This document shows, in pieces, positions 5,201-59,336 of a DNA stretch of 64,000 nt. How positions within the stretch are numbered: the first letter of the stretch is position 1; each line of letters opens with the position of its first letter. This stretch comes from Epiperipatus broadwayi (taxonomy: Eukaryota; Animalia; Onychophora), in contig JAQFVV010000002.1 of assembly GCA_028023455.1 (NCBI GenBank), positions 18,476,001 to 18,540,000 of the forward strand. The letters run 5' to 3'. A program made the position numbers and the translations under genes. The notes below the pieces were generated by a model. It did not search any database. It was not told the origin of the DNA and saw only the letters and a list, made by a program, of their open reading frames with translations.

Positions 5201-6095
5201 ATACCTAAATATTAAATTAGGTAAATTCTAAGTTAGAAGGCCTTTTTTTTTCTTTTACGATTATCTATTGCTTATTGAAATTGTGGCCATACTTTTCATA
5301 TTTTACTTACAATTAAAACTGATTCCCACCAATCACTCAATGATGAAAGTTATTCTTTATTTATCTAAAGAATGATTTCTATTAAGAATTATGAGAATGC
5401 AAACTTCCATTAACAATACTCAAGAACTTATTTGATCGATGAGTTTGCAATTTTTTCACGAACTCTGAATCAACCAACTTTTTTAAAAAGTATTTTAAAA
5501 GCAGATTAATGGAAATTTAAACATTTTTCATCAATATGGTTAAAAATTTTATCAAATAAAATCTTCCGTGACAAGTTGCATGTAATGCCAGGTTTTAAAC
5601 TTATGCTACAAAAATAAAGGTAAACATTAGAAGCCTTAAGCATAATATGGATAAAGAAGACAAGACAGATAACAGAATTATTAGATAAGTTGCATTTTAA
5701 TTTTTATTTATGTAAAAATAATCTTGGTTTGTTTAAGCCATCAATACTTAAAAAAAAATAAAAAATATTAAACTCACTAAAGTTTTAAAACAAAATAACA
5801 TTTATAATAAAGAAGGTATTTCGATATATATATTATTAACTCATTACTCATTGTTTATACACTTTTTTCCCATCCATCATCCTCTGCTTATTTTGGTACC
5901 AGAATCAGCTCCTCATGGTTCCACGGTTGCGTTATCACACCTGTCCTTGAAGATCATTATTCTAAATGCAAAATTTGTTTACAAGGATAGTTTTATTTAA
6001 AATTTCAAATGACATATAAATACTATTACTGCATATTATTGTTTTGCTTATTATTGTATATTATTTTAGTAATTAACTTTTCATAAATTCTAATT

Positions 6096-6293
6096 ACTGA
6101 AATACAGGCTTATTATAAATCTGTATCAATATATGTAATATATAGGGTATATGAGCACAGACTTTCACACGACCCACCACTCTCCACTCTATCTCATAAC
6201 ACTGATACACTTGAATACATATGTCGTTCAGTGTTATGAGATAGAGTGGAGAATGGTGGGTCGTGTGATAGTCTGTGTTCATATATCCTATAT
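6096..6293. mobile_element. Family A snap-back palindromic insertion (Penelope-like pLTR/retrozyme type)
   Basis: Inverted arms ~6138-6205/6228-6295; exact 13-bp TSD ATAAATTCTAATT at 6083-6095 and 6294-6306; homologous to copies at 11407, 26327, 41980, 43905 and 62405. Confidence 0.85.
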
Positions 6294-7275
6294 ATAAATT
6301 CTAATTGTAATAATAAATAGAATCATTTTATTATTTTCTATAAACCTTTTTATGATTTAGTTGCTAATAAATTTCTTGTTACATATAGAATCGTTTTAGG
6401 AGCACAAGAAATTATCAAAAAATCATTATTTGAAATTTATTCAGAATCAAAGCAAAAAAAGCTAGCTCACAACCACCCTCTTTTATTTCATAGTAATACT
6501 TTATTTCTCTCAAATTAGCATGCAAATGTTTTTCTTCATTTAATTCTGTGCTTCAATTCATCATAATAGTCAATTAACTTTTTTTTAAAAAAAAAAAAAG
6601 AAGAGCGAGATATTGAGTGATCTAGTTAGTAGTGTTTAAATATTCTGATTTCCTACCTCTAACATGCATTTTCAAAAATTTATCAAGGTTTAAAACGTAA
6701 GACAGATCAATTACAATCTTCCAAGATGTTAGTTTAACTTTAAATTCAAAGCTGTTAGATTTTATGAATTTATTTCCATTTTAGGTTAATATCTAATTTG
6801 GACTTAATGTTTTTCAATGACTTCTGAATATATTTTTGTGTTAAATTTCTTACCAGTATGAATAAATATTTATTACCACTATCAGATTAAAGTTTTACAA
6901 TAGTCAGAAGAAAAAAGGAAGAGACAATTGTTTTAAAAAGCGGACATGAATTATATATTACAAAGTAACAAATATTGGAAGCACAGCATTGTAAATAAAA
7001 AGTGAAAGAACAAGATTATGGAGATTTCTGATGTATCAGAAAGAGTGGTAAGATTAGTAATTCAACTTATTGTAAGATACCAAATGCAGACAACTCAGAT
7101 TTATGCACCCACAAGTTCTCATCGTGATGAAGAAGTAGAAAGATTTTTGATTAGAGCAAACAGCATTTTAAAATTGTCATGAGATTATAAGACCCTGAAA
7201 CATGAAAGTGCTGTGGATAAATTTGGTTATGATGATATAAATGAAAGAGGATACAGACTTGTGTGTTGTAAAAAC

Positions 7276-8017: not shown

Positions 8018-8110
8018 GTCAAGCATTGGTGGACAAGTGGTCAGCACAGCTGCCTTACAAGCAGTTGTTCTGGGTTCGCTTCCCAGCCGATGCTATGACA
8101 CATGGAAAAA
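8018..8110 (+). mobile_element. tRNA-Gly(TCC)-derived SINE
   Basis: tRNA-like body plus A tail; TSD AAGAAAAGTT at 8008-8017 and 8111-8120. Confidence 0.9.
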
Positions 8111-14828: not shown

Positions 14829-15942
14829 ACAAACTCCACATACAGCAGTGCCACTGAGTGCAAGTCATAGTAATAAATGGTTGCAAGAAGATTAGTGCAT
14901 GAAATTCCTATCTAGTGCCTACTCATACAATATCCCCAGACTAGCTTGTAGCTTTCATCAAAGAAGAGCCTTGGCTCAGAGAGAACCGCACTTAGATCTT
15001 AGGTTTTAATTCAATCCTACAGCAGTCCCCCTTTACCTTTTTAGTTAGTTCAAAATAAAAACAGATATTTTCAATCTATGCTCATTTGCTTGTGTTGTCA
15101 TATAGATCAGAACCTAGTTCAATATCTATATCTTTCGATGTCTGATCCTTTAATAATCATAATCACCATTATCTCACAAGCATGAATGGTATTAAACCAC
15201 TAAACATAACATGATCACTATTTCCTATGCATACACAAGCTGTTAAAACATTGTCAAACCCTACATACAGTAGTTCCACCCAGTACAAGTCATAGTAACC
15301 AATGGATGCAAAAAGGTTTGTGCATAAAATTCCCACCTAGTCCATACTCATCAAATATCCCTAGGCTAAAATGCTCTCACTGATGATAACCACTAGCTTG
15401 AAACTAGTCTGGAGATATTAGACGAATAGGCACTAGATAGAGATTTTATGCCCAAACTTCTTGTATTCATTGCTTACCATGGCTTGAACTGGGTGGGACT
15501 ACTGTATAGAGAGTCCCAACAACTTCTGAAAGCATAGAAAATGGCGCTCATGAGATGTTTAATGGGTTAATACTGTTCCTGTCCATGGGATAATGATAAC
15601 TATGGTTATTAAAGAACTAAAAAACCCAAAATCTATAGATACTGAACTAGTATTCATATCTATATGACTATATAAGTAAATGAACTTGGATTGAAAATAT
15701 TGTTTTCATTTTGGACTCATACCTTTTTAGTTAGCTAAAAAGATAAAGGGTGCCTGCTAGAGGGTTGCACTAGAACCTAACTAAGGTCTAAGTGCAGTGC
15801 TTTCAAATCCAAGGCTTCTCAGTATTAAAGCCAATGGGAATATTGGATGAGTAAGCACTAGATAAAGATTTTATGCACAAACTTTCTTGCATCCATTGAT
15901 TAATATGGCTTGCACTAGGTGGCACTACTGTATGGAGTTTGT
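14829..15942. mobile_element. Fold-back of a ~425-bp tandem HHR repeat unit
   Basis: Arms ~14829-15365 and ~15405-15942 are diverged inverted copies; each arm holds one unit plus part of a second (direct repeat at 14843 and 15268); degenerate TSD at 14802-14820 and 15948-15966. Confidence 0.85.
15376..15414 (+). ncRNA. Minimal type I hammerhead motif at the palindrome centre
   Basis: CTCA CTGATGA TAACCACTAGCTT GAAA CTAG TC TGGAG: palindromic helix III ACTAGT, GUC triplet; helix II carries a mismatch. Confidence 0.65.
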
Positions 15943-16558
15943 TTTACATTTTCCTTTTTGCCTTTCTTAAATATTGATATCACTACAGCATTTTTTTCTA
16001 AACTTCTGGTATATATTATTTAGATATTTGGTATTTAGTTTCGCCAACATTTTTCACCTCTTTTAAAATATCTCTAACAAATCTATTATTTCCTGAAGCT
16101 TTTCCATTTTTAGCAGATTTAATTTCACTTATCACTTCATATATATATATTGACCCAGAATATTTGCCATGCCATATTTGTTTCATCGGGAATCGACTCT
16201 GGATCACATGCAAATCTCTACACTCAAGTTCAAACCTTAAAGGTGCCCCAAGAAACATCTACAGAGATGTCTGTATGATCACACACACATGTATATATAT
16301 ATTAACACTATATATCTAGTTATTATGTATAGATTAATTTGTAATTAACTCAATTTGATAACTCAAAAATATTAAAATCGCATATATGTGGGTGAATCAT
16401 ACATATCACTGAGATACATATATATAGAACGTATTTTGTAATTTTGATTTGTTATAGTCTATAAAATTGATTTCTAAAATAATTTGTAAAAAGGATCACA
16501 CAATTCAAATCTAGTTGGGACTACTGTAGTGTATTAATTGATATTTAAAAAAGTATTA

Positions 16559-17290: not shown

Positions 17291-17505
17291 TCACTTGTAT
17301 GTGCCAGCAGTGTTTTAAAATTCAAAACGGCCACCGAGCATGCATTATATTGACACCGATAAAATTCCTACTATCACAGCAAAGAGCACTAAAATGATCT
17401 TTAGGGGATCTAAGACTAGAGCCATAGCTATTTTATAAACCCTATTCAATGTTCAAACTAAATTTTCATCTCTGTAAAACCTTTAATTTTGTTTAAAACT
17501 GAATT

Positions 17506-18923
17506 AAATTGAGAGAGTGCAAACTTCTCAAGCACTTGTGACTATTAGTAACCAATCAGATCTTAAGCACTGGGACAGGGAATTTAACAAGAAAAGAGTG
17601 GTTCCCACTCTTTTCTTTACTTGTCTTTTTATATATCCAAGCCAGTCCAAAGTGCTTATATCTGAGAGTGTAAATCTTAAATATCATCACACCTAATTGA
17701 CTGAGTTCAAATTATAAACATACAGTGTGAAATCTTTCGATTTACTATGCAGTAGTTTTTCGATGTTATAACTTTGCAGCAATATATGTAAATAATATTT
17801 TTATAAAGCACAGACGGTATTGAAAATTAAATTGAGAGAGTGCAAACTTCTCAAGCACTTGTGACTATTAGTAACCAATCAGATCTTAAGCACTGGGAAA
17901 TGGAATTTAACAAGAAAAGAGTGGTTCCCACTCTTTTCTTTTCACTTCTTTTTATATATCCAAGCCAGTCCAAAGTGCTTATATCTGAGAGCATAAATCT
18001 TAAATATCATCACACCTAATTGACTGAGTTCAAATTATAAACATACAGCGTGAAATCTTTCGATTTACTACGCAGTAGTTTTTCGATGTTATAACTTTGC
18101 AGCAATATATGTAAATAATATTTTTATAAAGCGCAGACGGTATTGAAAATTAAATTGAGAGAGTGCAAACTTCTCAAGCGCTTGTGACTATTAGTAACCA
18201 ATCAGATCTTAAGCACTGGGACAGGGAATTTAACAAGAAAAGAGTGGTTCCCACTCTCTTCTTTACTTGTCTTTCTATATATCCAAGCCAGTCCAAAGTA
18301 CTTATATCCGAGAGCGTGAATCTTAAATATCACACCTAATTGACTGAGTTCAAATTATAAACATACAGCATGAAATCTTTCGATTTACTACGCAGTAGTT
18401 TTTCGATGTTATAACTTTGCAGCAATATATGTAAATAATATTTTTATAAAGTGCATACAAGTAAAGAGGAGAGTGGGAACCACTCTTTTCTTGTTAAATT
18501 CCCTGTCCCAGTGCTTAAGATCTGATTGGTTACTAATAGTCACAAGTGCTTGAGAAGTTTGCACTCTCTCAATTTAATTTTCAATATCGTCTGTGCTTTA
18601 TAAAAATATTATTTACATATATTGCTGCAAAGTTATAACATCGAAAAACTACTGCGTAGTAAATTGAAAGATTTCACGCTGTATATTTATAATTTGAACT
18701 CAGTCAATTAGGTGTGATGATATTTAAGATTCACGCTCTCAGATATAAGTACTTTGGACTGGCTTGGATTCTTGTTAAAGTACTTTGGACTGGCTTGGAT
18801 TCTTGTTAAATTCCCTGTCCCAGTGCTTAAGATCTGATTGGTTACTAATAGTCACAAGCACTTGAGAAGTTTGCACTCTCTCAATTTAATTTTCAAAACT
18901 GTCTGCGCTTTATAAAAATATTA
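17506..18923. mobile_element. TSD-flanked fold-back concatemer of a 323-bp unit
   Basis: Three head-to-tail units starting at 17506, 17829 and 18152; inversion at ~18456, then about 1.5 inverted units; exact 14-bp TSD TTTAAAACTGAATT at 17492-17505 and 18924-18937. Confidence 0.95.
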
Positions 18924-19619
18924 TTTAAAACTGAATTGTAAACTTGTGGTTGTTTTATCAAACTGTAATTAATCTTTATTTTTGTGCTAGTAGTGACATC
19001 TATTAGTGTTTTTATAAGTTTCTAGTCATTAAAATTTCTTACCGATTCATGTTATAATGTGCCAAATGCCATAGTGAATGTATTAAAGATTTTAAGTTTA
19101 GGATGGGAGATATTACTAATTCTATATTTGATTTAATAATTATAGAATAATGTCTAGTTATTCAAATCCTACTTGCTATTTTGAATTTATATAGCTTGGT
19201 TATAATCTTCAATTACCCAGCAATCATTATAATGTTTGTATTGTTATATGATTCAAAGTTCACTTCATCCCATAATAAGTAACTGTTCTGATTATAGGCC
19301 AACTCTATGTTATAAGGTACAATCTATGAAGATTATCTTAACAAATAAATGTAATTCTAACCGTATAGTTAGCCATAATATCCCTTGAAATGCATATGTT
19401 GGATCAGAGTTAGTATCTTATTAAGTCAGACCATTTTATTATTGTATTAGCTTTCCAATACTTGTTTTGGAGATTAGCTTGTGTTGGCATTGCAGACATT
19501 CACTAATTACTTTAAATGCAAATGTAATTAGTCATGTTTTATTCATTGTATTGTACTTGTGTTAGGCCGGTAATACACACACACACACATATATATATGT
19601 ATATATTCATACCTTGCTA

Positions 19620-26326: not shown

Positions 26327-27195
26327 AGGTACTGTGGTATTAGAGCTGCGACATGACGAATTATAATCTTTAATCATTAAATTAATTAGGTTATTAAATC
26401 AAAAACATATTTTAAAATCTACATTAAAAAAAAAACAATTTAACAAAAAAAAATAGAAAAAGCATCAATGTGAAGAATAGTTAAAATGCGTGTTTAAATC
26501 AAATTGAGTGTGTGTTTGCACGTGCATATTCTGCATAATCTATTTTAATACATTGTACAGGCTTACACCTGCATTTATATATGTAATATATGCAGGATTC
26601 GAACTCAGACTTTCACACGACTTACAATTCTCAGTGCCATCTTATATTGCTGACTCACCTGATCACACACATGTTGAAAAGATAAATAATCACCAATAGA
26701 CGTATTTCGTGTTAAACCAGCACTCATTAAAGTATGAAGATTGGTTATCTTAATATAAAGCTGAGTACTAATTGTATATATGTGTGGAGTGGTAATCTGA
26801 ACCAACTTATGAGTTCTGGTTTGGCACGAAATACGTATATTGGTGATTATTTATCTTTTCAACGTGTGTGATCAGGTGAGTCAGCAATATAAGATGGCAC
26901 TGAGAGATGTAGGTCGTGTGAAAGTCTGAGTTCGATTCCCGCATATATAAATGCAGGTGTAAGCCTGTACAATGTATTAAAATAGATGCAGAATAGGCAC
27001 ATGCAAACACACCCTCAATTTGATTTAAACACGCATTTTAAATATTCTTCACATTAATGCTTTTCGTATTTTTTTTGTTAAATTGTTTTTTTTTTAATGT
27101 AGATTTTAAAATATGTTTTTGATTTAATAACCTAATTAATTTAATGACTAAACGATTATAATTCTTCATGTCGCAGCTCTAATACCACAGTACCT
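26327..27195. mobile_element. 870-bp near-perfect palindrome centred on a family A HHR
   Basis: Arms 26327-26727 and ~26808-27195; short TSD TGAATG at 26321-26326 and 27196-27201. Confidence 0.95.
26801..26844 (+). ncRNA. Family A hammerhead motif, core mutated
   Basis: ACCAA CTTATGA GTTCT-ggttt-GGCAC GAAA TACGTA TA TTGGT; G5 mutated; a partial antisense copy lies at 26692-26727. Confidence 0.6.
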
Positions 27196-41045: not shown

Positions 41046-41979
41046 ATCCTAAGTTCAAATCCCTCTACTTACTTACATATGACATATTCAGTACATTTAA
41101 TGAATAGACTAATTATAAAATGAATAAACTTTTTTTCTTTTTTACAACTACACCTGAATTTATTATTTTTATAAAACAAAGAAAATGAAACATTCGAAAT
41201 AAAAAAGAACAACTTATATTTAGATAGATAGATAATACTATGTATAGGAATACAGTTATTGGATCCTTCAGTATGTTATTTGCGTTTTATTGTTCTTATA
41301 AGGATAGTACTGATATTTATAAAAGATGCAATTAAATTTGCTATAAAAATAAACAGCTTGATGTTTTTATAAAACAGAAAAAAAAAAAAAACTAAGACAT
41401 TTGGAATGAAATTCAACATGCAATAGATAGATACTTTATATGTGATATAGTTTTGAAGTGGAAATATTTTCTGGTGGCTGTTGTTATTGTTGCTGTTGTT
41501 ATTATTATTATAATCATCATCATTACGATAGCACTGACATTTTAGAATCTCATCCTCCATCATTATTTGGATGGCTCTATATTATAAATGTCAAGTTATA
41601 AGGTCAAATTTATCTTACTAGTACAGAAATAATAGAATGTGCCACCAAGGTTTTAAGAAGAAAAATTAAACAAATTTCTCCTAGCCCTCTTTCAAATCTT
41701 TGTTGTCATTTTGTGTTAATTTAAGACATTTTAGTCTTCACTAATATTAGATTTTAAATCTCACTATATCACACACCTATTACGTCTAACAATAAAATCA
41801 CATAACATAACAACACATACAATTGTTATTGTTTGCCAGATATATTGTTTGGCCAAAAGATGATTAAACCTTTCAACAACACTTTAAAAGGACAAAGACA
41901 ACACACAGTGCTAATTATTAACTACTCCACAATTTCTACAGAGAAATAAAGATATGACTTAAAAAACATATAATATTTA

Positions 41980-42298
41980 ATACATTGTACAGGCTTAGCC
42001 TGCATTTATATATGTAATATATGCGGGATTCAGATTCAGACTTTCACACGACCCACAACTCTCAGTGCCATCTCATATTGCTGACTCACCTGATCACACA
42101 CATGTTGAAAATATAAATAATCACCAATATACGTATTTCATGCTAAACCAGCAATCATCAGTTGGTCTAGATTGCTGGTTTAGCATGAAATATGTATATT
42201 GGTGATTATTTATATTTTCAACATGTGTGTGATCAGGTGGGTCAGCAATGAGATGACACTGAGAGTAGTGGGTCATGTGAAAGTCTGAGTTTGAATCC
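41980..42298. mobile_element. Family A snap-back palindromic insertion
   Basis: Left arm carries the complete 3' end; fold-back at ~42170; exact 13-bp TSD CATATAATATTTA at 41967-41979 and 42299-42311. Confidence 0.9.
42123..42166 (-). ncRNA. Family A hammerhead motif
   Basis: ACCAA CTGATGA TTGCT-ggttt-AGCAT GAAA TACGTA TA TTGGT. Confidence 0.7.
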
Positions 42299-43904
42299 CA
42301 TATAATATTTAGTAAAATATCAAAAGAGAATGGAGTTATACTAAAGTTGCCATTTACGATCTGTGTTTGTAAAACCTTATTATAATTCTGAATGTCAGAC
42401 AATGAATTCCAAATATATATAACAGATTTCACTTATATTAATTTTGAAAAAAAAAAGAAAAGAAAATCAAGTTTCAGAGGAAAGTAATCAATATAGAGAT
42501 ATTTAAGTAAGCAGAAGTCTAAGATGGTTGTGATATCTGAATAATGATTGATAACTGCATTCCTAAGGAAAAGTTCTTTTTGGTGAAAGGATTATAAGAA
42601 AAAGATTGAGAAGTAGATCTAAGTTTAAGGTACAAAAATATTTACAAGCAATCTTGGAAAAATTTTTTTATTACTCCTATTAACTGCTTAAAATTATTTG
42701 ACCTTATGGCACCTAAATCTTTTGGAGAAGCACTAGAAAGTAAATTAATATATATAAGAAAGCAACTAAATGATCATAACACTCTTTATAAAGAAAATGG
42801 CAAGTTATTGCTTTTCTGCAAGTCACTATGGTAAGAAACACTAGTAGACAAAAGATAGGTTTATTATTAAATCCTTTATCAGCAAACCCTTAATATTTGT
42901 TCGTATGCTTGGGAACTATTTAGTTATTAATACTAAAACATAATAATAATAAAAAACATAACTATTTAAAAGAAATATTTTTTAGAATAATAACATACAA
43001 AAGAGAAAGGCTATTAGATAAAAAGAAAAAAAAAAGAACATAATTATACAGTATAATACAATGAAGAGAAGAGGAAGAATTGAGAGAATTAAACAGTACA
43101 ATACAATATGCATGGAGGTAATAAAATAATGCTAAGCAAAAATAAGTGAAGAAAACAAATTTAAAAATAGATTTTACAAAAGAAATTATTAAAATTTATT
43201 GGAATAGTAAATAATAACAGTGTCTGTAGAAAAAACAATAGAAAGATGGAATAAAAGAAACTTAAAACAATACATAAAAGATGAATTTGCTAAACTGCTT
43301 GCCTTTTTATTGAATGTAATAAATAAAAGTATATAAGATTGATTCAAACTAATCATTAGAAAAACAAACTTGTGAAAATGAGACATAATTTGTGGCAACA
43401 TTGACAATAAAAATAATATCATGATAAAAAAGATTATTGGTAAGATAAAATCAAATATTTATAATTAACTAGAGGGCAATTGAAAAATTTCAGTCATAAG
43501 AGACCTCGAAGTAATTTGATGAGATGAAATTTCATTGTTAAGAAAGAGAAAAGTGATATACGACAGATGACAAGAGAAATTGCTCGGGTGGCAAATAAAG
43601 TTTTTTTTCTCTCTATTTGTGCTAAAAAATGTCTTTGTACTTTATAAAGCATGAAACTTTTTAATTACATCATCATTTGATTTGATAAAAATCAAAAAAG
43701 CAATTCAAAACAAATAATATTATCTAGATGTCGTATACAGTATAGTTACAACTAAACTAATTATGAAATACAGACCTGAATTAAATTAATTTTTAATACA
43801 TTCAAGCACCGTCTGCACACCATGAATGAATATCGTTTTTGTTATTGATTATATTTTAACTAGATCACACACAGATTGAAGAACACGTATGCGTTCTATA
43901 AACA

Positions 43905-44155
43905 TTTATTATAATATATAGGGTATATGAGCACAGACTTTCTCATAACACTGATACACTTGAACACATATATGTTGAAAAGATAAATAATCACCAATAT
44001 ACGTATTTCATGCTAAACCAGCAATCATCAGTTGGTTCAGATTACCATCTCTTCACATATATGCTATAAGTGCTCATATATATATTAAGATAGCCAATTC
44101 TCATACTTTAATGGACAGACTTCAATCTATACCACACTCCAACTCTTCAACCATC
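43905..44155 (-). mobile_element. Family A monomer with HHR at 43993-44036
   Basis: Colinear with 11407-11715; HHR identical to the 42123 copy. Confidence 0.85.
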
Positions 44156-56354: not shown

Positions 56355-57656
56355 TTGTATAAAGCTGCCATCTTTATATATTTTTTAAAATTAATAAATC
56401 AATAGAATTTTAGTTTCAATTTTATCACCAAAATGAATACAAAATTGGCAAATAACTGCTACAGATAGTTGCAAAAGAATGAATTTAAACCAAATGACAA
56501 AAACCATCCTATTTTGCACTGAATATATGCTGCTAATAAGGAAGAGATTAAATTTGAAAATTTTGGGTTTATCTGAAGGAAAATTTAATAATATATTCAT
56601 TTTTTTTAATGATAGTAATAAATGCAAATTAAAATATGATGAAATGAATTAAACTATGAGATTGTTATTTAAAAAAATTACAATATTTTTGAAGATTGGT
56701 TTATTTTCTAAGAAACACTTGTAAGTAGTCATTAATAAAATACAATATCCACTCAATGGAATTTCATATTTTTATAAGTATAATATGATAACCATATTCA
56801 TTTTCAGAATGACTAGATTTTGAAAGATATTCATTTATAGCACACTTCCACTATGCAAGGTAGATCTTTTACAGAACTGTTGTATAGCATACTTATAAAT
56901 GTACAATGACGCAGAAACAATGGTGCTGATATTTGTATATAAAATCTTACAGTATTTCATATAGTATAATGATTTTTCACCTCTTTAAAACATGTTAAAA
57001 AAAAACAATTCGAATCTTGTCAGAGAGTGATGTAATAGAAAAATATCAAACTGTCAACATGGGCATTGAGATCTAGGTGTTTAATGCCTATAGAATATGT
57101 AAAAGATGAATGAAATGCATGTCTAATGAGAGCAAATAGTGTACAGTTGCAATATAATTGGGATCGAAAAAGTGAATGCACTGATAACAATTTGAAAATA
57201 CATATATATGTGTTCCATAAAATACTCCAATTAATATTTAAATCATATTATGAATAAGCAGCTTTCAAAATCTAACCATACTTTGAAACTAAATATAATA
57301 AACATATTGCACTTATAGGAATTTGAATTCTTATTGGATGGTTGTATTTAACCAATGGTTATTGATGAGCTTTTATCTTGAAAGAAAATCCATCTGGAAA
57401 AATGATTTTATAATTCTTCAAACCAGCAATGCTGAATGTGCTTTCATTTCCAAATCTATTAGACAATGCTTGTTTCATTTTAGTATATATCGACACTATT
57501 TCAGTATTACACATTTCAGATATCATTTCATGTAAGTTGTGCAAATTTATTTCCATTGCACACATATTAATTGCCATGCTTACTAACAATTAATTAATAC
57601 TTTTATAGTAGAAAATCTAATCGCATGTTGAAAATAAATATAGAAAATATATTATA

Positions 57657-58579
57657 TAATAGTATTAGCGATTAAGCCAATGCACATGCGCTTTAAAGAG
57701 ATTATATAAATGAATACTCAATTTTCCAGACACGAGATATAGTATTTTAGAAAGAATGGAATGAATCCACCCATTCTTTCAAACCCAAACGTTTATGTAT
57801 GGGCAAATCTTAAGTGTGTGGAAATAAGAGTGTGAGATGTTACACGATCACTTTAAATTACATTTATTAAGTTTGAACGAATGACACTTTGCGAAATCTT
57901 TACAATTTACGAACCGTCATTCTTTAGTTGAAATTAAACATATATAATGAGATATTATTTTATATAGCGCGAATGTTTATTTATGTAATAGTATTAGTGA
58001 TTAAGCCAATGCACATCCGTAAGAGATTATATAAATGAATACTCAATTTTCCAGACACGAGATATAGTATTTTAGAAAGAATGGAATGAATCCACCCATT
58101 CTTTCAAACCCAAACGTTTATGTATGGGCAAATCTCGTGTCTGGAAAATTGAGTATTCATTTATATAATCTCTTTAAAGCGCATGTGCATTGGCTTAATC
58201 GCTAATACAATTACATAAATAAACATTCGCGCTATATAAAATAATATCTCATTATATATGTTTAATTTCAACTAATGAATGACGGTTCGTAAATTGTAAA
58301 GATTTCGCAAAGTGTCATTCGTTCAAACTTAATAAATATAATTTAAAGTGATCGTGTAACATCTCACACTCTTATTTCCACACACTTAAGATTTTCCCAT
58401 ACATAAACGTTTGGGTTTGAAAGAATGGGTGGATTCATTCCATTCTTTCTAAAATACTATATCTCGTGTCTGGAAAATTGAGTATTCATTTATATAATCT
58501 CTTTAAAGCGCATGTGCATTGGCTTAATCGCTAATACTATTACATAAATAAACATTCGCGCTATATAAAATAATATCTC
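57657..58579. mobile_element. TSD-flanked fold-back concatemer of a 329-bp unit
   Basis: About 1.45 forward units (starts at 57657 and 57986), inversion at ~58135 via ATCT microhomology, about 1.35 inverted units; exact 13-bp TSD AAAATATATTATA at 57644-57656 and 58580-58592. Confidence 0.95.
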
Positions 58580-59336
58580 AAAATATATTATACTTAAAAG
58601 AACATAACTTCTGTTGACTGGATGCTTGGGCCTGAAATGGCTAGTAATGAGATTCCATTTATAATAAAGTCAATCTGGAAAAGGGTCTTTCATAATTCTT
58701 CAATTAATCATGATATCTTCATTTAAATGGGTATTAGATGCTTCATTTCAATATGCATATGTGTGTGCATATATATTAATTTTAGTAAATGCATAGAAAT
58801 TAATTATACTGAGTAATGGAAATATATTTATTCTCTATCATGCTAAATTTAAATTTTACTATATTTTTAAACATTACCAACTGCTTTCACAACATATATT
58901 GCAATAATGGACTGAAACCCTCAAATTGCACTAAATTCTGTCATTACAGGTGAACACTAAATATGGTTCTATTATATATATGTTAATTCAAATATTATTA
59001 AAAAATGCATAAAGAATGGAAAATTATTTTAATATGGTTGAAAATGGATTAATAATACAATCTGCATTTAAATCCTCTTGAAAAACCAATTGTTGCTGTA
59101 TTTCTTCATTATGTATTTTGAAGTAAAGGAAAAACTTTTTTCTCTTAAATGCATGATAGGAATTTTATAAAAATACTATAATAATTAATATAATATTTAA
59201 GGGAAATTACATAATCCACTTATTAATACATTCATTTATCTATTTTTCTTCATCAGTTCACTTCTCAACATCCATTCATTTATCAATCCATCCATTCAAT
59301 TACCAATCTATAAATTTATTGAAATATTTAATGATA

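Follow-up and report, generated by a model that had tools for sequence, protein, structure and literature searches.

The structures closest to the one described here are known from the PLEs (Penelope/Poseidon, Neptune, Naiad, and Chlamys) and from short elements which have been connected to them. PLE insertions consist of partial tandems, the pseudo-LTRs (pLTRs), often with an adjacent inverted and 5′-truncated copy, and carry a tail of 30–40 bp which is often placed at one end only (PMC8557442). In the PLEs of Adineta vaga, the tail has a length of 31 bp, the TSDs are 8–10 bp long and palindromes are located at the inverted junctions; in addition, the pLTRs of this species can mobilize unrelated sequence in trans (PMC3846280). 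The purified PLE protein of Anolis cuts both strands of the DNA and extends them, and PLE reverse transcription begins at two neighboring sites within the RNA, with the intervening sequence becoming the tail (PMC11167929).

Canonical hammerheads are lacking from the Naiad and Chlamys PLEs. The non-autonomous Chlamys elements (e.g., MRC1 of Chlamydomonas) are dependent on PLEs, form pLTRs and are found as hammerhead-less, non-coding, multicopy insertions in head-to-tail order (PMC8557442). The animal non-LTR retrozymes are non-coding tandem units of ~300 bp with low GC content, dispersed as dimers to multimers and flanked by TSDs longer than 4 bp (PMC7229834). They have been proposed to be non-autonomous derivatives of PLEs and, in a 2026 preprint, they are argued to derive from the pLTRs of these elements (bioRxiv 10.64898/2026.07.22.740005).

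Similarly to the PLE insertions, the 1.4-kb insert located at positions 17502–18927 of the window (i.e., the whole stretch of 64 kb that was analyzed) contains a head-to-tail partial tandem followed by a head-to-head inverted 5′-truncated copy. It also shares with them a one-sided tail (30–40 bp in PLEs, 36 nt here), a TSD, an AT-rich target and a hairpin or palindrome near the inverted junction (PMC8557442, PMC3846280, PMC11167929). Unlike the PLEs, it has no RT/GIY-YIG ORF, its entire unit is 323 bp and the TSDs are 13–14 bp long, versus 8–10 bp in A. vaga. The resemblance to the animal non-LTR retrozymes covers the non-coding low-GC units, their size and multimeric arrangement, as well as the length of the TSD, but the type I hammerhead which defines the retrozymes is absent from either strand of the insert. 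On the contrary, the lack of a hammerhead, the lack of coding capacity and the multicopy head-to-tail order are all found in the non-autonomous Chlamys elements; these, however, belong to green algae and have their 3′ ends in common with known autonomous families, whereas the host of the insert looks like a CpG-depleted, AT-rich genome of animal type.

Since the combination of a tandem, an inverted 5′-truncated copy, a one-sided tail and a TSD is the published signature of PLE insertions, the block is probably a non-coding, non-autonomous, hammerhead-less short retroelement, for which the RT/GIY-YIG of a PLE would have acted in trans on multimeric RNA or on several RNAs. Its best reading would be that of a hammerhead-less relative of the animal "non-LTR retrozymes" and of the PLE pseudo-LTRs, and not that of a new kind of element. 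The PLE-type reading is weakened by the lack of a PLE coding sequence in the window and by the length of the TSD, as the published PLE TSDs are shorter (8–10 bp) and no match to a stagger of 13–14 bp was found among the PLE reports compared.

In order to describe the anatomy of the insert, the unit was numbered with phase 1 at AATTAAATTG (position 17825), and each 20-mer was assigned a phase and a strand. Tandem Repeats Finder detected a period of 323 bp with 3.0 copies and 95% matches over 17502–18451. In the phase map, the forward part amounts to 2.95 units and the inverted part to about 1.4 units, that is, ~4.4 units of mixed orientation inside a single TSD pair, and repeat finding gave long inverted matches of 96–98%. 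The GC content of the unit is about 31%. No ORF was found in the insert, the longest stop-free run of the multimer being 62 aa. The three head-to-tail units followed by an inverted run, as well as the lack of an ORF, had already been noticed in a sequence-only reading of this locus, and both were confirmed.

In detail, the left TSD copy TTTAAAACTGAATT occupies positions 17492–17505, and its last 4 nt (AATT) also fit the element. The left arm starts with its outermost unit (F1, 17502–17824), which begins with phase 1, the "short" terminus. The next unit (F2, 17825–18147) is a variant with two clustered non-CpG differences, at phases 75/77 and 118–122, and the last one (F3, 18148–18456) is truncated at about phase 305 and has a 3-bp deletion in the unit alignment. 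All three are assigned to the minus strand, which would be the sense of the RNA. In the phase map, the forward run therefore opens with phase 1 at about 17502 and breaks off near phase 305, at 18452–18456, where it meets the inverted run. At this head-to-head junction (18453–18457), which was read directly from the sequence, forward phase ~305–308 is connected to inverted phase ~123 with a microhomology of up to 4 nt (AGAC-like, read as ATAC).

The right arm is on the plus strand. Its inner inverted unit (18457–18769), which is complementary to the forward units at 96–97%, starts at phase 123 and runs down through phase 1 and then from phase 323 to phase 134. An exact duplication of 31 bp (two copies, 18747–18808, extended to 18810 by Tandem Repeats Finder) follows in the same strand, and both copies span a junction at which phases 93–133, the site of a large hairpin, are deleted. 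The loss of the large hairpin at a junction of the inverted run and a duplication of ~30 bp had both been reported earlier and were found again, the latter now with its exact length. We interpret this duplication as the product of a polymerase that repeatedly skipped template, or slipped, across the hairpin. Past it, the right arm proceeds through an outer inverted partial unit (18800–18891, phases 92 to 1) to a one-sided "tail" of 36 nt (18892–18927, phases 323 to 288), which lies beyond the end point of the left arm and reaches phase 288 at 18927. The right TSD copy TTTAAAACTGAATT is located at 18924–18937 and its first 4 nt (TTTA) also fit the element. The outer ends of the insert read ...AATT and ...ATTATTTA, and neither contains an A-run.

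The large hairpin, AAGAAAAGAGTGG-TTC-CCACTCTTTTCTT, has a stem of 12–13 bp and is located at 17589–17617, with more copies at 17912–17940, 18235–18263, and 18464–18492, that is, in all forward units and in the inner inverted unit. It is found 7 nt away from the head-to-head junction. Compared with shuffles it folds far better (z −4.6). The unit also contains a AACCAATCAG box and a small hairpin, ACTAC-GCA-GTAGT. The large stem and the CCAAT box that had been listed for each unit are thus present, and so is the small hairpin, although its loop is of 3 nt (GCA) and not of 2 nt (gc) as had been stated.

The window contains exactly two occurrences of the TTTAAAACTGAATT 14-mer, one at each edge of the insert, with a chance expectation of 0.02. 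The comparison of 17300–19150 with contigs from two public runs (organisms A and B; run type taken to be RNA only by guess) provided the respective empty site. One contig of run X2, about 12% diverged from the flanks, connects position 17497 to 18934 with six other letters between them. This contig is an empty site, in which the duplicated 14-mer region is present once and the 1.4-kb insert is lacking. The exact 14-bp TSD and the empty site in the contig of a related organism show that the block was acquired in a single insertion event, as the earlier description of one 1.4-kb insertion had it.

The contigs are also informative on other copies of the family. Their depth is 100–1300 over the unit versus 0–20 over the flanks in the two runs (whose RNA status is guessed), those matching the insert region are 85–99% alike, and some, from other family copies, contain strand-switch (fold-back) joints at different positions. 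Therefore, both organisms carry multiple and diverse copies of the 323-bp family, and fold-back is not confined to the one described here. Pattern scans of metagenomes for further copies of the family gave no match. At the left flank (17300–17361) the contig depth is raised (22–94) in both runs and the contigs diverge at 17350, and the insertion appears to be placed next to or inside another repeat there.

A second insertion, of a 329-bp family, is located at 57644–58592 including its TSD (element at 57657–58579) and is made up of 1.45 units in forward and 1.36 units in inverted orientation. It is flanked by the exact 13-bp TSD AAAATATATTATA at 57644–57656 and 58580–58592, its head-to-head junction (58131/58132) shows a 4-nt microhomology (ATCT), and its right arm reaches 37 nt past the end of the left arm. 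In the 1.4-kb insert, the corresponding end points are phase 1 for the left arm and phase 288 for the right arm, the latter lying 36 nt farther on in the unit.

For an alignment in the same sense, the units of the two families were both opened at the long terminus. They reached a global score of 40, compared with −26 ± 13 (maximum 20) for 300 shuffles, a lenient null given that the shuffles were mononucleotide ones, and with −12 for the opposite sense. The hairpin, a GTAAAT.G...GATTTC.CGC block and a terminal GYGCTWTATAAAA..TAT block are collinear in both families. The large hairpin has the same position in the 329-bp family, where it also folds better than shuffles (z −3.3), and shows a compensatory change between the two (GAGTGG/CCACTC vs. 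GAATGG/CCATTC). Judged from this alignment, the 329-bp family is a distant homologue of the 323-bp family.

The short and the long termini of both families coincide within about two alignment columns. Thus, two independent insertions of diverged relatives share their two end positions and differ only in their inner junctions. As a single 323-bp copy is readable in full, the fixed termini of this family are taken from the comparison with its 329-bp homologue. Such defined and shared outer ends point to a linear or multimeric template on which reverse transcription starts at defined sites, as in the PLEs (PMC11167929). The sequence-only reading had described the inverted run as crossing the units at arbitrary phase; this holds for the inner head-to-head junction, but the two outer ends are defined. 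Fixed termini in other copies had been named there as an observation which would tell against it, and they were found in part, with outer ends 36 nt apart at the same aligned positions in the 329-bp family.

Inverted-repeat finding over the window revealed several more fold-backs. Two of these are insertions with exact 13-bp TSDs. The first one (6096–6293, 198 bp; 6083–6306 with the TSDs) is flanked by ATAAATTCTAATT and has a tail of about 44 nt at the left end only. It matches Rfam models of miRNA hairpins, as it is a palindrome. The second one (41980–42298, 319 bp; 41967–42311 with the TSDs) is flanked by CATATAATATTTA and has a left tail of about 46 nt. Within this tail a CAGGCTTAGCCTG hairpin is included, and a related copy is found at 43951–44026. 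Both fold-backs are unrelated to the 323- and 329-bp families. In all four insertions, that is, the 1.4-kb insert, the 329-bp-family insertion and these two, the TSD is 13–14 bp long, and the one-sided tails are 36, 37, about 44, and about 46 nt, respectively. GTAA directly follows the TSD in three of the four insertions, as GTAAAC (17505/18938), GTAATA (6306/6307), and GTAAAA (42311/42312). This may be a target preference, but its side is inconsistent relative to the tail.

No ribozyme was detected. At E ≤ 10, no Rfam ribozyme family matched the insert region and, at E ≤ 0.5, no hammerhead, twister, pistol, hatchet, HDV-like or other Rfam ribozyme was found in the whole 64-kb window, where the sole Rfam matches were spurious hairpin or miRNA models on palindromes. 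A CUGANGA...GAAA pattern is missing from both strands of the insert. A hammerhead descriptor (core, helix II, and GAA, with swapped C3:G8 pairs including A3:U8 allowed) likewise gave nothing on both strands of both families. The absence of a recognizable hammerhead, as first noted from the letters of the insert, is in agreement with these scans. The folding of the whole unit compared with shuffles gave z −1.7 on the putative RNA sense and z −3.1 on the opposite (plus) strand, a difference too weak to decide the strand of the RNA. Around the two termini, folding was not significant (z +0.5 and −1.1). A possible AAGCGC/GCGCUU pairing flanks the short terminus on both sides in both families.

On the PLE-type reading, the enzyme would cut both target strands 13–14 bp apart, and each of the freed 3′ ends would prime a cDNA on the RNA of the element, starting from either of two internal sites that are separated by about 36 nt. 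With priming at such internal start sites, both outer ends of the insert would be 3′ ends of the element, one of them with the 36-nt tail. Every cDNA would span more than one unit, either on a multimer RNA from a tandem source or through an enzyme jumping between templates. In the right arm, the polymerase would have skipped the stable hairpin twice and slipped back once, with the deletion and the 31-bp duplication as a result. The two cDNAs would then have been joined head to head at the 4-nt microhomology near the hairpin, each being filled in against the other, and the fill-in would have generated the TSD. We infer the enzyme and the order of these steps, as well as the strand of the RNA, which would be the minus for the left arm and the plus for the right arm. 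Snap-back priming at the hairpin was also considered as the source of the inversion and was rejected, since neither junction is a perfect palindrome centered on the hairpin.

The differences among the five unit copies are relevant to the form of the template. Many of them are CpG-to-TpG/CpA in the unit alignment and would be compatible with decay of the units after their insertion into a CpG-depleted genome. Three non-CpG variants (111C, 153A, and 171G) are common to F3 and the inner inverted unit. These shared variants and the clustered ones of F2 are hard to reconcile with one monomer circle, which would give identical units. The shared variants could instead come from gene conversion between the arms, and the comparison is an argument rather than a proof. 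It concerns the explanation in which the 323-nt RNA would be a circle of the retrozyme or viroid type, with an unrecognized non-hammerhead processing signal, and the RT rolled round the circle to produce the concatemer. The size of the unit, its low GC content and the head-to-tail multimers in one TSD-flanked insertion do resemble the animal non-LTR retrozymes, which are expressed as circRNAs of 170–400 nt (PMC7229834) and for which rolling-circle mobilization is the current working model (bioRxiv 10.64898/2026.07.22.740005). The better folding of the plus strand is also in favor of a circle, and the enzyme could still be that of a PLE, in which case the two explanations overlap in all but the form of the template. 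Nevertheless, the lack of any Rfam ribozyme and of a hammerhead even with swapped core pairs, the defined outer ends conserved between two diverged families, the clustered non-CpG changes of F2 and the three variants common to the two innermost units all speak against it, and a circular template of this kind is considered unlikely. Even less probable is the version in which 323/329-nt RNAs would be cut and circularized, either through a self-cleaving motif not yet described or by host enzymes at the conserved hairpin region, and the circles then copied by a PLE RT. Consequently, of what the sequence-only reading had proposed, reverse transcription of a multimeric non-coding RNA of ~323 nt best explains the architecture, but copying round a circle at arbitrary phase does not agree with the defined ends and the unit variants, and a circular RNA with a new processing signal is not supported.

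Two further explanations leave the PLE enzyme out altogether. In L1 biology, twin priming is known to leave an inverted 5′ segment inside one TSD-flanked insertion. The insert resembles the L1 twin-priming inversions in the inverted and direct segments within one TSD pair and in the microhomology at the junction. A multimeric non-coding transcript could accordingly have been retroposed by a LINE through L1- or R2-type target-primed reverse transcription, with the inversion arising from twin priming; a TSD of 14 bp is within the LINE range, and a possible decayed fragment of an RT-like ORF is a candidate nearby (16016–16258). However, neither end of the insert has poly(A) or a simple-repeat 3′ tail, and the TSDs, at 13–14 bp in four out of four insertions, are of a fixed length, narrower than is usual for LINEs. 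The constant one-sided tail of 36–46 nt is also at odds with the L1 inversions, as such a tail has been described to be specific to PLEs and absent from LINE TPRT (PMC8557442). The LINE-driven route is thus very improbable, and the same low probability is given to an origin at the DNA level, that is, a satellite or eccDNA integrated at a break, a fold-back or MITE-type transposon with internal tandem repeats, or a palindrome created by an assembly error. The tandem-plus-inverted layout is superficially like that of Foldback elements and of palindromic amplification, and the family is multicopy in two organisms. Yet the TSD is exact, accompanied by a clean empty site, and at 14 bp longer than those of DNA transposons; the arms do not form symmetrical terminal inverted repeats but are shifted against each other by a fixed tail, and unrelated families again show this TSD length and tail. 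As for an assembly artefact, the fold-back joints of other copies in independent contigs argue against it, together with the TSD, the empty site and the recurring footprint. Known classes were compared separately. MITE/Foldback elements (symmetrical TIRs, 2–10-bp TSD) were rejected for the 36-nt offset of the arms and the exact 14-bp TSD, Helitrons (no TSD, 5′-TC...CTRR-3′ ends) for the exact 14-bp TSD, and a satellite array (long, homogeneous, no TSD) for the presence of only about 4.4 units in mixed orientation with a TSD and an empty site.

If the PLE-type reading is true, the formation of concatemers would belong to the integration machinery of the PLEs and would be independent of RNA circles made by ribozymes. 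A hammerhead-less concatemer would then be a natural ribozyme-minus control, or counterpart, of the retrozymes, and would bear on how the animal retrozymes mobilize. The near-constant TSD of 13–14 bp in four insertions would provide a figure for the stagger of the strand cuts made by the enzyme of this genome, and the tail length of 36–37 nt in the 323- and 329-bp families would be a second one. As far as annotation is concerned, such fold-back concatemers would be assigned to PLE-type non-autonomous retroelements, and not to satellites, MITEs or assembly errors.

The GC content of the window ranges from 22% to 34% and its CpG observed/expected ratio is 0.37, which indicates a methylated genome. 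The 64-kb window is nearly devoid of ORFs and contains only two of 110 aa or more. No PLE coding sequence was found in it, and the ORFs, inspected by eye, included no convincing coding remnant of a PLE or a LINE. A near-perfect palindrome of 870 bp at 26327–27195 belongs to the same family as the fold-back at 41980–42298 and includes a tRNA-like B-box (GGTTCGATTCCCGC). Its arms are equally long and it has no clean 13-bp TSD, with only TGAATGA at a 1-nt offset. Older and more diverged inverted repeats (75–82% complementary) are located at 1625–1878 and 14892–15937, one of them with a possible 10-bp TSD, TTAAAATTTA, at 1570/1951; these repeats may derive from insertions of the same type which have since decayed. 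Finally, a tRNA-Val(TAC) is located at 8022–8095.
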